Of a DNA stretch of 64,000 nucleotides, positions 21,875 to 62,516 are shown piece after piece. The stretch is taken from the NCBI RefSeq assembly GCF_001194135.2, contig NC_068988.1, positions 29,941,741 to 30,005,740 on the forward strand, written 5' to 3'. The notes under the pieces were generated by a model that was not told where the DNA came from, did not search any database, and saw only the letters and a list, made by a program, of their open reading frames with translations. Origin of the DNA: Octopus bimaculoides (lineage: Eukaryota). Numbering within the stretch: the stretch's first letter is position 1; each line of letters opens with the position of its first letter. The position numbers and the translations under genes were made by a program.

Positions 21875-22595
21875 ATGGCTAATCAAACTAATCGATTGAC
21901 ACTAGTGGGGCTAGTGATTCTATGTTTTTGCCCATTAGTATCTAGTGTATATTTACTGGGCACCGAGACATCTTATGCCCAATTCTCGCTTTGGAATATA
22001 TGTTTAAATTCCAGTTTGTCTTTTAGTTTCAAAACTTCTCAACAATCCGCTCTTCTCATGTACACAGATGACAATGGAGTAATGGACTTCTTTCAGATCA
22101 ATCTGGAGGAAGGAATTATATCATTGACTATTAAAATTTCCAATCAGCCCGATGTGTCCCAAACTGTGAAAATAGTTGGACCGTTTCATGACAATCAATG
22201 GCACAGTGTTACGGTCAAGCGAAACAGTGAAATCACTAGTTTCACGGTTGACCAGACCACGGAACATATGCGCTTCGAAGGAACTGACTTCTTGTTCGGT
22301 TCGGAAAAGATCCATAACTATGTATATTTCGGAGGTATGCAGGAGCTTGACAATAGTAAAGTGTCCAATCCAGAAGCGAAATATTCCAAACGTTTCAAGG
22401 GATTCGTTCGGAATGTGATCTATGGAAATTGTTCTTGTATTCCAGTCCGTGCCGAAGTTGTCGGTGGAATAGATATGGATGATGGTGATGATGAAACATG
22501 CAAAAAACCTTCGATCTGTGACAAAGGGTGTATCTGCATTCGAACGGATAATGGATACGGCTGTGATTGCGTTTACCGGGAAACATGTTTGGAAG
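21875..22595 (+). CDS. Coding exon 1: signal peptide + neurexin-type LNS (Laminin G) domain + EGF-like domain
   Basis: ATG at 21875 with an in-frame TGA upstream (21818-21820). Hydrophobic leader MANQTNRLTLVGLVILCFCPLVSS. YAQFSLWN..LSFSFKT...LLMYTDDNGVMDFFQINL...FHDNQWHSVTVKRN...VYFGG...RFKGFVRNVIY resembles alpha-neurexin LNS1 as I recall it. EGF-like C..C..CICIRTDNGYGCDC..C follows. Donor GAAG|gtaag at 22596, phase 1. Confidence 0.93.
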
Positions 22596-22995
22596 GTAAG
22601 GCATTTTACATTTCATTGTTTCCAAAATTCGAAGAATTTCGTTGTTTGTTTGTTGTCCGGCAACAGGCCGGACTTCGTTATCTTGCAAACATTTACAACT
22701 TTTAAACGGATAATACTTATAGATATTGTATACATACATGCATCAGTGTATAAAGGTAGAAATAAAGTGTATGGTGTGTGTGTATGTGTGTGTGCATGCA
22801 TTACAAAAGAAATAATAAATAATTCAAGTTACTTGTCCGAATCCCAGATAATCCCTTTCTGAATGTAGCAGTTATCAAAATCATCTAAACCAGATTATCA
22901 AAACTGAAGTGAAACTACTTAACATGATTATCTTGGGAAATATGATCCCTAACATAAACTTTAGAAAGGAAGAAGGGAAAGGTTAGTTTTACTAA

Positions 22996-23156
22996 AGGCG
23001 CTACTTAAATACAGAGGTCCCGCTTAAATACAGCAGCCCCGATACATCTACGTAACGATGTTTTTACAGTGCACGCTCGATAGGGTTAGTTTTAGGGTTA
23101 GGGTCAGTTCTAGGGTTACGTAGATGCGTTGGGACCTTCGTTTTTAAGTAGTACCT
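22996..23156. mobile_element. 161-bp fold-back MITE with internal TTAGGG-like repeats and a 6-bp TSD (TACTAA)
   Basis: Ends aggcgctacttaaa / tttaagtagtacct; inner IR catctacgtaac / gttacgtagatg; TACTAA at 22990-22995 and 23157-23162. Confidence 0.75.
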
Positions 23157-23394
23157 TACTAAGACCCTATGTGTTCGTAAGTCCGTGGTCCTCGTGTCTT
23201 GTGTGCTGCTCTACAGGACTTCTGTTATCAACATTGAAGCCTCCGATTTATAAAATATAAGAGATGAGATATTTCGTGATGTTTGTGAAACGGTACTGGA
23301 ATGGACTGTCAGTCAGTTCCTGTAACATAAATTCAGATTTTGGTGCAGGTATTTCGTTGTATTTATGAGTATACCACACCTCGTTTTATGGTAT

Positions 23395-23740
23395 ACCCAT
23401 GCAAGTGTTTCATCACAACTTTCAGAAAATTGAATATTTTTTTTAATGAAATTTTCTGCAAATAGCTTTCAGATAGTGTTGATAACTATATCAGAATTTA
23501 ATATATAAAAATAATTGGTCAACGCGCACACGCACGAAATCTTAAGTTTCGTTTTGAACATATTGTATGATATGTGATGTGTGTCAGTATGTATTTGTGC
23601 GCGACCACCAATTTTTGGGGGCACATTAAATTTCTTACGTATTATTATTATTATTATTTTGATACATTAAATTTCACTAAAAATTACATATTTTCTTGAA
23701 AGTTATATAAGAAGTGTAAACACAATCGGGGTGGAATACG
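23395..23740. mobile_element. Degenerate inverted-repeat element
   Basis: aactttcagaaaattgaatattttttaatgaaattt (about 23415-23455) is imperfectly inverted at about 23665-23710. Confidence 0.35.
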
Positions 23741-24325
23741 TGTGTGGAGATAATGCCTTGTTTTTCGTGGTTAGTTAAAAGAGGAGGGCAATACCCAGTG
23801 AACTTTTTAAAGGGACTTCGATACTTGTTGGAGAGAAAAGAATAAGGAATCTTCACTCACACTTGCAACAGAATGGCCTCTACTAAAGGCACTAGGGTGT
23901 TATGTGGTGCTGTTAAAACCGGTTCTTAGATTTGTACCGTTGGCTGTCAGGAAATGAGTATTCTATGAACGAAACCTGATCAAAAGGATTTTACTGTCAA
24001 AGTTTATGTTCGTCTCGTGTTACGTCATAAATATATTTTATAAATACTTTGTATCATATTTTTACATATCTTTTATGGCTATATGCTCTTGATTTAGAGG
24101 AACGAGGACACATTTTGTTGTAGATTTGTCCAGCTTACCAGAGATGTAAAAGGAAAGTTTCATACGATGATGTAGATTAATGACTAATTGTAATTCTTGG
24201 ACAACTTAAGTAAACATTACTAATAAAGAGAAACAGTGAAACTGAAAATAAATACAAATAAACTGTTGAGATCATCTTGAGAGAAGAAGGATTGGACTAT
24301 ATTTACACATCTGAGTGCATGCATA

Positions 24326-24538
24326 CCCGTATATGATGGTAGATAAGACACACCTGTGTTTTATGGGGTGGGGGGTTCCTAATTAAACGTCTCAAAATAT
24401 GACCCTGGGTCCTATTCAAAATGAGACTCATATTACATGCTTTAATGCACAAAAAACATTTTTCACTCTAAATACGCGCTACTGAATTTGAGGTGCGTCT
24501 AATATGCTCAGTGCGTCTTTTTTGCCATCAAATACGGG
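24326..24538. mobile_element. pogo/Tigger-type Tc1-mariner MITE
   Basis: TA|cccgtatatgatgg ... ccatcaaatacggg|TA terminal inverted repeats, with gtgcgtct subterminal motifs. Confidence 0.75.
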
Positions 24539-25144
24539 TATATACAGTAATATACAATCCACACACACTCTCTTTCTCTCTCTCTTTCTCGTTGCTGTAT
24601 TTCACTCTTCTGGGCGTTCAGTTTATAGGAATTCCCACTTTTCAGTTATGTTGAATTTTAGTTGCTATTTGTGATAAGGATGCTGTTCAGACCCCCTCGG
24701 GATTTCACTCCTGAGACTTGCATAATCACCTGCCTTATGATCTGTGGTCGTGAATTTGTAATCTGTTTATTTCGAGTCCGTTTTAAAGTCAATGCTAGTC
24801 TCTGAGGGAATAAGGTACAAACATTGAAGATATTGTGTTGAACAGTTCTCCTTCGAAGTCCCATTCGCCATGGGAAAAGGAAAGGGTTCTGAAGTCAGGG
24901 CAATTAATATTACAAATTAAAATTTGGGGGAACTTGTTTTTCTATATCGTTCTAAGAAACAAGGGAAAGACTTCCTCCTACCCCACCCCATTTTCTCGTA
25001 AATTATTGTTTTTTTACAATTTTTTTTTTCCAAAAACCCACGTTTTCGGATACGGAGATTCCGGAAAATTGCAAAAATCGGAATTTTGAATTTTTTTTGC
25101 AACCCACCCCCACCCCCAATTTCTTCATTTTTCACTTTTTTCTG

Positions 25145-25181
25145 TAACCTTAACCCTAAAACCCCCCAAACCTAACCCTAA
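25145..25181 (-). repeat. Short degenerate (TTAGGG)n-like tract running into an N gap
   Basis: taaccttaaccctaaaaccccccaaacctaaccctaa. Confidence 0.5.
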
Positions 25182-60530: not shown

Positions 60531-60601
60531 CTTGCCAGCATGTTATGACTTTTAAGCCATTTTTGGTCTTCCAAAGCTGTTATGATTTTTCATTTTTACA
60601 G

Positions 60602-61051
60602 GTTACACAATCAGTATGTGGATGAGTTTCCGTAACCCTACATACAAAAGACAACTCTTCATGTCAAGTGGTGCCCATCTGGAAAATTCTCATGGAATTG
60701 CCATGTACTATCGTAAAGGAGTTTTAGAATTTGTATTCCGCAACAAAGCTGGCTTAGAATGGACTGAGAAGAGTATGAACATTCTTCCTTACCATTGGTA
60801 TCATGTGACAGCTACTTGGAGTAAATTACAAGGTTTAAAGCTCTACGTTAATGGAATCAACACACATTCAAAGTCCCAACCACCTAAACAGAAAAAGGCA
60901 GCTGATAGTTCCCCTAATTCACAACCAAGACATTTCTACATTGGATGTTCAGACACACAGTGTGCTAAGTTTGGCCAAGGTATCATTATCGTTGATGAGT
61001 TCCGGTTCTGGCCAAAATATGTTTCAACCAAACGAGAACTCAGACAACTAG
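60602..61051 (+). CDS. Coding exon 3: remainder of the first pentraxin-like/LamG_3 domain
   Basis: Acceptor tttttcatttttacag|, donor CTAG|gtaagt (61052). 450 nt, phase 1-1. GYTISMW...WYHVTATWSKLQGLKLYVNG...FYIG...VDEFRFW are typical concanavalin-A-like/pentraxin strands. Confidence 0.93.
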
Positions 61052-61237
61052 GTAAGTGGTCCTTATTTTGTTCTTATTAATGTTAAATTCACAAGTTGGT
61101 TTTGTTTAGCTCTTTAAAGGAATTTTTTAAAAAATATTTGTTTGTTTTTGGCTTCACATTTAGGTTAAAATTTTATTTGGTTAATTCACAAAAATTTCTT
61201 TAACTATCACAAGGCCTATTAATTCTAAGTGCTCATG

Positions 61238-61272
<35 letters not shown>

Positions 61273-61363
61273 GCTATCTTTCTTTCTATCTATCTATCTA
61301 TCTATCTCTACATGTGACTGTTTGTCTATCTATCTATACATGTGACTGTCTGTCTATCTATCT

Positions 61364-61429
<66 letters not shown>

Positions 61430-61886
61430 NNNNNNNNNNNNNNNNNNNNNNNNNNNNNNNNNNNNNNNNNNNNNNNNNNNNNNNNNNNNNNNNNNNNNNN
61501 NNNNNNNNNNNNNNNNNNNNNNNNNNNNNNNNNNNNNNNNNNNNNNNNNNNNNNNNNNNNNNNNNNNNNNNNNNNNNNNNNNNNNNNNNNNNNNNNNNNN
61601 NNNNNNNNNNNNNNNNNNNNNNNNNNNNNNNAGAGCCACGCCTGCACCTACACACACACGCACACACGCACACACAAGTAAGCACATAGGTACAGAACAA
61701 GGTAGAAAAAAAGATGTAAAGACAATTTCTTGTTTTTCTCTGATCTTTCTTCTTGTCTTTTTCCTTCTCAATCTCATCATTACACCTGATCTCGTAATCT
61801 TGTTTCAATGAAGGTAATTTATTATTTGAATTAAATGCTCCTTACACAGTCCCTCACCTCTACCCATCTCTTCTCTTCACACTCAG

Positions 61887-62516
61887 GAGCCATTTTCCAT
61901 TATTATTTGAATATGGATAAACAGCACAGAAACGAACTCGATGTGAAATATCTGGATGCTAAACTACATGACAATGCAATGCTCTCATTAGATTCCAAAC
62001 TTGGTAAAGCTCTACACCTTGGTGGCAAAGGAGATTATGTGTCTCTGAAACACAAAAGAGGTACTTGCCTGAAAGACACTTCCAAATGTATGTATGGTTT
62101 CATGATTTCAACATGGATTAAATTCAAGAACCTTTCTGGGAAACACTATTACATGTCAAGTGGACCGAAAGGATTCACTATATATTCCGTGGACAACGAA
62201 CTCTTTGCAAAGGTAATTAATAACAACCAACTTTGGAAAGTGTGGACTGGTAATATCAAAACTGGAGAATGGTATTTCTTAGAAATATCATTTCACATGA
62301 AGAGTGGTTTGTCTATGTACTTGAACCAGCGTCTTGTAGGTTCCCCTACAGTGTCTTCCCATAAGATTATTGGTTCCATTCAGCAGGATGAGATTTATAT
62401 TGGTCAAAATATGGAAGCAATGTCATCAACTATGTTTCCAGAAGTTGCTATTGATGAAATGGATATTTACCTTGCCGACCGCGATACTCTCATATTTATT
62501 GATTTCATACAACGAG
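61887..62516 (+). CDS. Coding exon 4: complete second pentraxin-like/LamG_3 domain; gene continues beyond the window
   Basis: Acceptor ctcttctcttcacactcag|, donor CGAG|gtaag (62517). 630 nt, phase 1-1. YYLNMD...GKALHLGG...CLKDTSKCMYGFMISTWIKF...WYFLEISF...GLSMYLN...IYIG...AIDEMDIY aligns by eye with exons 2+3. Confidence 0.93.

Follow-up and report, generated by a model that had tools for sequence, protein, structure and literature searches.

An octopus gene with a neurexin-type first exon and tandem Laminin_G_3 repeats is probably a member of the PHRED-1 family

We followed up a sequence-only reading of a 64-kb stretch of Octopus bimaculoides DNA (the window), and we confirmed four exons on its + strand, which make up the 5′ end of a single, very large octopus gene; the window holds the promoter-proximal part (exons 1–4) of that gene. 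Overall, the data are probably explained by one such gene encoding an alpha-neurexin-derived, PHRED-1-type type I membrane protein. Its ectodomain would begin with a signal peptide, LNS1 and an EGF-like module, go on with five or six tandem Laminin_G_3 repeats, and close with LNS2 to LNS6 and their EGF modules; beyond it, as in the Argonauta orthologue, would come a transmembrane helix, a long segment rich in Gly and Ser, and a WD40 β-propeller specific to the family. Flatworm members of the family have already been described, and the octopus genome annotation already covers part of the gene. What had been envisaged as a poorly characterised family thus proved to have its exon chain in RefSeq and the domain plan of the published PHRED-1 family.

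The four exons occupy positions 21875–22595, 57397–57612, 60602–61051 and 61887–62516. Read directly from the sequence, their borders are GT/AG throughout, and because the exons are 721, 216, 450 and 630 nt long, every junction is phase 1; joined, they give a 672-aa open frame with zero stops, as expected from the initial description of four in-frame phase-1 exons. Exon 1 begins with the ATG start, covers the predicted signal peptide, LNS1, an NCSCIPVR linker and the EGF-like module, and ends at a phase-1 GT donor (...TTGGAAG/gtaagg). Exon 2 (phase 1-1; ttcag/TT...CCAGCTG/gtaagt) carries the first third of Laminin_G_3-like repeat 1, up to a C-x6-C-P-x-G motif, and exon 3 (phase 1-1; ttacag/GT...CAACTAG/gtaagt) carries the remainder (GYTISMW ... 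WYHVTATW ... GLKLYVNG ...). Exon 4 (phase 1-1; ctcag/GA...CAACGAG/gtaagt) holds the complete repeat 2, one repeat being one exon. Intron 4 starts with a GT donor at 62517 and fills the rest of the window (62517–64000), the gene running on past it. The 672 aa are the exact N-terminal prefix of XP_052825991.1 (RefSeq "neurexin-1a isoform X3", Octopus bimaculoides, 2303 aa), so RefSeq already contains the splice from exon 1 to exon 2. XP_052825991.1 continues with repeat 3 (RPNIYYFPFERM...); no match to repeat 3 was found inside the window, and this next exon lies outside it. Judged by the Laminin_G_2 and Laminin_G_3 scores, the match to a mussel protein (all given below) and the RefSeq identity, the exon chain is far beyond chance.

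Exon 1 had been likened to the head of an alpha-neurexin, and this comparison held up. In alpha-neurexins (NRXN1-3; PDB 3qcw, 3r05), as here, the first coding exon encodes a signal peptide, LNS1 and EGF. The exon 1 product, which is identical to residues 1–240 of XP_052825991.1, contains an LNS1-type laminin G domain at aa 27–192 (Pfam Laminin_G_2, E = 4.5e-21) and a Cys-rich EGF-like module at aa about 205–240, and its hydrophobic N terminus suggests a signal peptide at about aa 1–24. The motifs quoted for this exon (YTDDNG..DFF, HDNQWHSV, VYFGG and CICIRTDNGYGCDC) are all present. Its best PDB match was neurexin-1alpha residues 5–216 (LNS1+EGF-A), and the octopus head is 35% identical to neurexin residues 23–246. 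Pfam EGF models gave no match on exon 1, and the EGF assignment is a putative one that rests on alignment with neurexin EGF-A. An HMM built for the head scored 138–162 bits on canonical neurexin LNS1 versus 20–49 bits on canonical neurexin LNS2-6, and in a tree of heads the family and neurexin LNS1 grouped together against LNS2 in 92 of 100 bootstraps. Neither the family alone nor the canonical neurexins alone formed a group in any of the 100 bootstraps, leaving the two unseparated. The linker between LNS1 and the EGF-like module is specific to the family and adds an extra NCSC Cys pair after LNS1, unlike in alpha-neurexins.

The downstream exons have a different character. On exons 2-4, Pfam gave 55 bits for Laminin_G_3, 15 bits for Laminin_G_2 and 12 bits for Pentaxin, and exons 2+3 matched Laminin_G_3 with E = 1.4e-14; by this comparison, exons 2-4 encode two Laminin_G_3 jelly-roll repeats and not neurexin LNS domains, as had been proposed. 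Searched by itself against Pfam, exon 4 had no match; it is 30% identical to repeat 1 (E = 7e-9) and scored 251 bits against the family repeat HMM. The reported C-x2-D-x3-C-x2-G-x-T-x-S-x-W and WYHVTATW...GLKLYVNG motifs are present. An AlphaFold2 model of exons 2+3 (pLDDT 90.2) is a beta jelly roll, whose best structural matches were the lectin-like subdomain of clostridial neurotoxins (Foldseek TM about 0.70, E about 1e-10 to tetanus toxin Hc), and a repeat profile search reached NTNHA (E = 1e-7) and PTX3 (E = 1.9e-5). The clostridial neurotoxin Hcn subdomain, NTNH and the PTX3 pentraxin domain share the concanavalin A-like jelly-roll fold with the repeats but only 12–17% identity, and the likeness is one of fold and superfamily, with no shared function implied. 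The label of pentraxin-type domains stands to the extent of this remote resemblance; a pentraxin proper was rejected, the Pfam Pentaxin model scoring 12.1 bits, under its cut-off of 25. Related repeats do occur in adhesion GPCRs, as had been pointed out: those of invertebrates scored 45–79 bits per copy against the family repeat HMM, and Acanthaster planci XP_022103402.1 has jelly-roll repeats of ~200 aa in tandem with the same C-x6-C ... G-x-T-x-S-x-W motif; the PTX-like domain of ADGRD1/GPR133 is a putative further domain of this type. The Acanthaster protein combines Laminin_G_3 with GAIN, GPS and 7tm_2 (all three present in the echinoderm repeat-bearing protein P0049), whereas a domain search of the octopus gene's relatives P0154, P0286 and P0002 found none of the three, which ruled out an adhesion GPCR of the ADGRD1/GPR133 type.

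We were concerned that exon 1 and exons 2-4 might come from separate genes, through mis-scaffolding or a prediction artefact over the gap-ridden 35-kb interval between them. Intron 1 (22596–57396, 34.8 kb) contains nine N gaps (3070 N summed), microsatellites and interspersed SINE-like repeats, XP_052825991.1 and the other gene models used, including all those bearing the join, are predictions, and other assemblies often call exon 1 as an isolated short ORF. Against this, a chromosome-level assembly yields the same protein, and the 672 aa match a protein of the mussel Sinanodonta woodiana over 98% coverage (E = 1e-185, 38% identity) whose gene is divided into exons in the same way, its first intron corresponding in position to intron 1 and measuring 83 kb; exon 2 is 46% identical to Sinanodonta residues 255–322, and its border is kept in the mussel gene. 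The plan of head, EGF and repeats is collinear over the 1/2 junction in Sinanodonta woodiana, Owenia fusiformis (3736 aa), Seison nebaliae (4756 aa) and Argonauta hians (3299 aa), and in five other species the head-to-repeat junction differs in length by at most two residues. On the metagenome contig L002 (1679–5236) the head, EGF and four repeats form one uninterrupted 3558-nt ORF, and on another contig, of 1443 nt, the head also passes unbroken into repeat 1. A split or misjoined gene is therefore highly improbable. Nor do the gaps need to conceal canonical LNS2 exons: orthologues align over the 1/2 and 3/4 junctions with a length difference of ≤1–2 residues, so no coding exon must hide there. 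None of the N runs in the window touches any of the four exons (one further run, 61430–61631, lies within intron 3), inspection of ORFs in intron 1 found none that was convincing, and tblastn with the mussel orthologue as query found no extra exons in the entire window.

The five repeats of XP_052825991.1 give way to a block of LNS2 to LNS6 that is collinear with alpha-neurexin, octopus residues 1296–2286 aligning with neurexin residues 256–1251 in a single stretch (29% identity, E = 2e-139). Pfam finds six Laminin_G_2 domains in the protein, and, as in alpha-neurexin, its six LNS domains with interspersed EGF modules stand in the same order. Because this block aligns as one stretch of ~1000 aa, the array of Laminin_G_3 repeats has been inserted into a complete ectodomain of alpha-neurexin type; the idea of a chimera was right about the neurexin head and wrong about a foreign body. 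These features, the RefSeq name neurexin-1a and the grouping of the octopus head with neurexin LNS1 would also suit a canonical octopus neurexin, an NRXN1 orthologue and presynaptic organiser with a lineage-specific insertion of Laminin_G_3 exons. We consider this quite unlikely. The canonical neurexins among our matches run from the head straight into LNS2 with no repeats, whereas in octopod proteins five or six repeats separate EGF-A from LNS2; the canonical proteins P0009, P0010 and P0014 end in a short tail with KEWYV, whereas in the Argonauta orthologue the C terminus is a WD40 propeller (...RKHVLA). Identity over LNS2-6 is just 29%, and the combination of head, repeats and WD40 is common to an annelid and a rotifer, hence not lineage-specific. 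Bivalves have both kinds (in Pinctada P0030 the head leads directly to LNS, and in Sinanodonta P0001 to repeats), so that repeat-bearing and canonical neurexins are paralogues, at least in bivalves. An alternative at the other end of the gene, which we judge unlikely, is that the gene mainly makes a protein secreted into the matrix, the downstream WD40 exons encoding an independent cytoplasmic protein. Isoform X3 indeed stops at ...SGRTGSATEEMS right after the last LNS domain, without a transmembrane segment, and the annotation lists XP_052825992.1 (336 aa) as a protein of its own. However, the latter model begins midway through a conserved propeller region, as seen in alignment, and in Argonauta, Owenia and Seison one unbroken protein spans head and WD40. 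In Argonauta (3299 aa) a transmembrane helix comes after the LNS block, then a long stretch rich in Gly and Ser and, at the C terminus, a WD40 propeller; this C terminus is 94% identical to XP_052825992.1. A hydrophobic stretch is the candidate transmembrane segment in both the Argonauta and Owenia relatives. On O. bimaculoides chromosome CM046608.1, the last LNS exons (L005 817–6654) and the WD40 exons (9974–12829) are on the same strand, ~3.3 kb apart and annotated as separate genes, and the range of a 2509-aa laminin G product includes the WD40 exons. The last LNS exons and the WD40 exons are separated by about 950 nt of N, at the very place that the exon for the transmembrane and Gly/Ser-rich parts should occupy; no transmembrane exon was found at this locus, and it is presumed to fall within the gap. 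We infer that exon 1 and the WD40 exons are joined in a single O. bimaculoides transcript. The proposed downstream extension of the gene thus led, in its relatives, to a transmembrane helix and WD40 propeller instead of GAIN/7TM or a PDZ-binding tail.

This reading of one PHRED-1-type membrane protein agrees with the description of PHRED-1 from Schmidtea mediterranea, which has a signal peptide, laminin G and EGF domains, a single transmembrane pass, an intracellular WD40 region and a strongly conserved C terminus, with homologues reported in lophotrochozoans only, Octopus included (Adler and Sanchez Alvarado, bioRxiv 10.1101/131789). The octopus gene has the signal peptide, laminin G and EGF ectodomain and, downstream on the same strand, WD40 exons with the conserved C terminus (...TIVALGDK.G.RKLIMLQVV); the Argonauta, Owenia and Seison relatives have all described domain features. 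A tail profile search retrieved only 58 proteins, among which all the named ones are spiralian and none bears a flatworm name. More broadly, wherever a match with the head and repeats or with the specific tail has a name, it comes from a mollusc, an annelid or a syndermatan, many matches being nameless; judged on the named matches, the gene shares with PHRED-1 its restriction to Lophotrochozoa/Spiralia, as the suggestion of a lophotrochozoan family had implied. The proteins also differ: PHRED-1 is described as 2536 aa with 6 laminin G and 9 EGF domains and no mention of a Laminin_G_3 array (bioRxiv 10.1101/131789), whereas in octopods the first LNS-EGF unit is followed by 5-6 repeats of this kind. 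Membership of the octopus gene in the PHRED-1 family is inferred from this architecture and that paper's statement.

Phase 1-1 repeat exons placed in the intron after the LNS1-EGF exon could be inserted, and perhaps skipped, without loss of frame. The insertion is old, since it is common to molluscs, an annelid and a rotifer. In the resulting protein, the lectin-like ectodomain would bind extracellular partners and the WD40 propeller would recruit cytoplasmic ones. Planarian PHRED-1 is expressed in muscle and is required for orderly muscle fibres (bioRxiv 10.1101/131789); purely by analogy, the octopus protein may be an adhesion or matrix receptor, and any reading of its ligands would follow from the same analogy. 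The number of Laminin_G_3 repeats between EGF-A and LNS2 is five in O. bimaculoides isoform X3 and six in Argonauta, and the 2509-aa product of the octopus locus is 206 aa longer than isoform X3. Because most exons of the array carry one whole repeat each in phase 1-1, the repeats could be cassette exons. We raise, tentatively and as a somewhat doubtful proposal, that the PHRED-1 family is marked, across spiralians, by a hitherto undescribed feature, the Laminin_G_3 array after LNS1-EGF, with its repeats as variably included cassette exons. If this is true, the ectodomain of PHRED-1-type receptors would be tunable by splicing, akin to the neurexin splice code.

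Four exons on the forward strand of the window make up the start of the gene. Exon 1 (21875-22595) carries the ATG start and ends in phase 1, exons 2 (57397-57612), 3 (60602-61051) and 4 (61887-62516) are each of phase 1-1, and all four have canonical GT/AG borders and join into a 672-aa stop-free frame, so the four in-frame phase-1 exons proposed from the sequence alone were borne out. The window is 37% G+C with abundant CA/TA/GATA microsatellites and 19 N gaps, nine of them in intron 1, one in intron 3 and none touching exons 1-4. Neither tblastn with the mussel (Sinanodonta) orthologue nor a scan of both strands for long stop-free frames found a hidden exon in the window, and Rfam and tRNA scans of it gave no matches. 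In the 21.9 kb upstream of exon 1 (1-21874), we found no tRNA, no Rfam match and no persuasive ORF; this region is made up of microsatellites, low-complexity frames of Ser/Leu type and nine N gaps, the ninth of which (21337-21369) sits ∼500 bases upstream of the exon 1 ATG. Repeat-finder output for the window was chiefly N runs and microsatellites. Several short interspersed repeat families, whose copies are 78 to 88% identical and lie mostly within intron 1, were also seen: one at 39678-39872, 44129-44323, 45437-45631 and 54605-54799; another at 36830-36978, 41899-42047 and 63037-63185; and a third at 459-577, 35758-35876, 36598-36716 and 45230-45311. These look like SINE-type elements and matched no Rfam family or tRNA.

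Exon 1 encodes the head of the protein, which matched Laminin_G_2 in Pfam (E = 4.5e-21). Its closest solved structure is neurexin-1alpha, where the top-scoring stretch was residues 5-216 of the 3qcw chain (LNS1 and EGF-A; 53.5 bits, versus 39.8 to LNS2 and 39.1 to LNS5). An HMM of the head, trained on four members of the family, gave 138 to 162 bits for LNS1 of canonical neurexins but just 20 to 49 bits for their other LNS domains, and in a neighbor-joining tree, 92 of 100 bootstraps placed family heads together with neurexin LNS1 and apart from LNS2. The identification of exon 1 as an alpha-neurexin LNS1-EGF1 head therefore holds; the tree did not separate family heads from those of canonical neurexins. 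Between LNS1 and the EGF-like module lies a Cys pair with its linker, YGNCSCIPVR (aa 183-192 of the exon 1 protein; region given as window 22185-22205), which does not vary between the octopus and mussel proteins and is recognizable in Owenia, whereas neurexin-1alpha lacks it at the aligned position. This element may serve as a family signature.

Exons 2-4 had been read as lacking neurexin LNS character, and our searches agreed. Exons 2 and 3 together form a single Laminin_G_3 domain (Pfam, E = 1.4e-14), with Laminin_G_2 (15 bits) and Pentaxin (12 bits) both under the Pfam cut-offs. Exon 4 alone had no Pfam match and is a second copy of the repeat, scoring 251 bits to the family repeat HMM and sharing 30% identity with repeat 1 (E = 7e-9). 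AlphaFold2 modeled repeat 1 with confidence (pLDDT 90.2, pTM 0.88) as a beta jelly roll, and the structures closest to it were the lectin-like subdomain of NTNH and that of the binding domains of tetanus and botulinum toxins (TM ∼0.70). As single sequences, the repeats returned only noise against the PDB; remote matches came with a profile, which hit an S-layer Laminin_G_3 domain (1.5e-10), NTNHA (1e-7) and the PTX3 pentraxin domain (1.9e-5). Taken together, the profile, structural and Pfam results mean that the description "pentraxin-like" is true only at the superfamily level, and we rejected the reading of these exons as true pentraxin domains. Tandem copies of related repeats, each scoring 45-79 bits, are present in uncharacterized proteins from echinoderms, amphioxus, a hemichordate, a nemertean and a cnidarian, and one such Acanthaster protein carries GAIN, GPS and 7tm_2 domains. 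Thus, the suggested resemblance to adhesion GPCRs stands insofar as the repeat module is common to such proteins, but GAIN and 7TM domains were absent from every relative carrying the octopus-type head, and for this reason we rejected the adhesion-GPCR reading. Laminin G3/Pif-like shell and eggcase proteins of Argonauta were set aside because their architecture differs.

We were concerned that exon 1 might belong apart from exons 2-4, either through mis-scaffolding or as one of two genes. A first search with the 672 aa matched a single protein, the partial Sinanodonta woodiana ACJMK2_013699 (1101 aa), with 98% of the query aligned at 38% identity; this match spans the exon 1|2 junction, beside which there are just two one-residue gaps. 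The octopus and mussel genes have a common exon plan, with signal peptide, LNS and EGF in one exon; in the mussel, this head exon is followed by an 83-kb intron, a next exon that stops at the same C-P-x-G point and, further downstream, mostly one repeat per exon. A profile search covering 1.8 billion representatives found the head-plus-repeats plan also in Owenia fusiformis (3736 aa), Seison nebaliae (4756 aa) and an 1185-aa protein. The last is read from one unbroken ORF of 3558 nt at 1679-5236 of L002, a metagenome contig, and head and repeats therefore lie within one exon in at least one organism; on a further contig of 1443 nt, the head reads straight into repeat 1. The cluster of an exon-1-like fragment contained XP_052825991.1 (2303 aa), "neurexin-1a isoform X3 [Octopus bimaculoides]," whose residues 1-672 are identical to joined exons 1-4, junctions included. 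RefSeq already joins these exons and, given this join and the collinear plan of the relatives, a mis-scaffold or two separate genes is very unlikely.

The single gene encodes more than a head and repeats. XP_052825991.1 consists of the head, five repeats (243-1290) and five further LNS domains, and its residues 1296-2286 match canonical neurexin 256-1251 (LNS2 to LNS6) in one stretch (29% identity, E = 2e-139). The Laminin_G_3 array was thus inserted into an alpha-neurexin-like ectodomain that is otherwise complete, and the earlier picture of a neurexin head borrowed by a foreign body was not sustained. In the Seison protein, the ectodomain also holds three Frizzled-type Fz domains (Pfam Fz, 4.3e-50), which were not seen in mollusc or annelid family proteins.

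A WD40 domain forms the C-terminal end of the Owenia and Seison proteins, with a hydrophobic stretch ahead of it. A search with the Owenia tail led to an O. bimaculoides WD40 protein in a cluster of XP_052825992.1 (336 aa) and Argonauta hians GAB1600660.1 (3299 aa). The accession of the former adjoins XP_052825991.1, and both lie on the same 97.8-Mb chromosome. GAB1600660.1 is collinear with XP_052825991.1 (64% and 52% identity), its last 336 residues are 94% identical to XP_052825992.1, and its order is head, six repeats, five LNS domains, hydrophobic helix, Gly/Ser-rich stretch and WD40. Helix and Gly/Ser-rich stretch together span residues ∼2480-2950. A GAIN/7TM end had been named among the features to look for further downstream in the gene; the Argonauta orthologue ends in WD40 instead. 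On a downstream stretch of the octopus chromosome (L005, from CM046608.1), the last LNS exons (817-6654) and the WD40 exons (9974-12829; CM046608.1 ∼30.201-30.204 Mb) are on the same strand, separated by an N gap of ∼950 nt (7530-8480; CM046608.1 ∼30.199 Mb). RefSeq places two genes around this gap, XP_052825991.1 and XP_052825992.1, and its WD40 model begins midway through the conserved propeller region. A gene called at L005 1-22832, with a 2509-aa laminin G product, ranges over both sets of exons; it extends beyond the WD40 exons and overlaps an opposite-strand peroxiredoxin gene (18458-22832). The simplest reading is one gene split by the assembly gap at the expected repetitive transmembrane and Gly/Ser exon, which the gap probably hides.

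Schmidtea mediterranea PHRED-1, "a divergent neurexin-1 homolog" required for muscle-fiber organization, has been described with such a plan of laminin G and EGF domains, a transmembrane pass and WD40, a combination reported only in lophotrochozoans, among which Octopus is named (Adler and Sanchez Alvarado, bioRxiv 10.1101/131789). By its architecture and that description, the octopus gene would be a PHRED-1 family member. The octopus gene has the Laminin_G_3 array, whereas the paper does not mention one, and our literature search found no further paper on such an array in this family. The WD40 tail is family-specific: a profile built on its first 240 residues matched only 58 proteins, of which the named ones are all spiralian and none bears a flatworm name. 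Canonical neurexins among our matches have no repeats, the three inspected over their full length (P0009, P0010 and P0014) end in KEWYV, and both kinds, with and without repeats, are present in bivalves, which favors the family being a paralogue and not the neurexin orthologue. The proposal of a neurexin paralogue thus survives, although the gene is already annotated and its probable family published.

For the most part, each repeat has a phase 1-1 exon to itself. There are five repeats in isoform X3 and six in Argonauta, of which one (residues 1096-1292) has no counterpart in X3, and the 2509-aa product of the octopus locus exceeds X3 by 206 aa, or about one repeat; these observations are consistent with candidate cassette use of the repeats. 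The product could be a type I receptor, in which a very long lectin-like ectodomain would be paired with a cytoplasmic propeller acting as a docking platform and, by analogy with PHRED-1, it may have a role in adhesion or matrix organization, possibly in muscle.

We conclude that the gene is real and that the reading first proposed for it was correct in part; it is already annotated but misnamed and probably split, and probably of a published family, with the undescribed Laminin_G_3 insertion as its sole new element. The finding is an annotation correction and not a new class of system: the RefSeq name "neurexin-1a" masks a probable paralogous receptor, distinct from the synaptic neurexin, with a WD40 cytoplasmic domain, found among named relatives in spiralians only. 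The gene is also a clean example of phase-1 exons bringing new domains into an ancient adhesion gene at a conserved intron and, if the family link is true, it would be the counterpart in cephalopods of a gene that planarians require for muscle-fiber organization.
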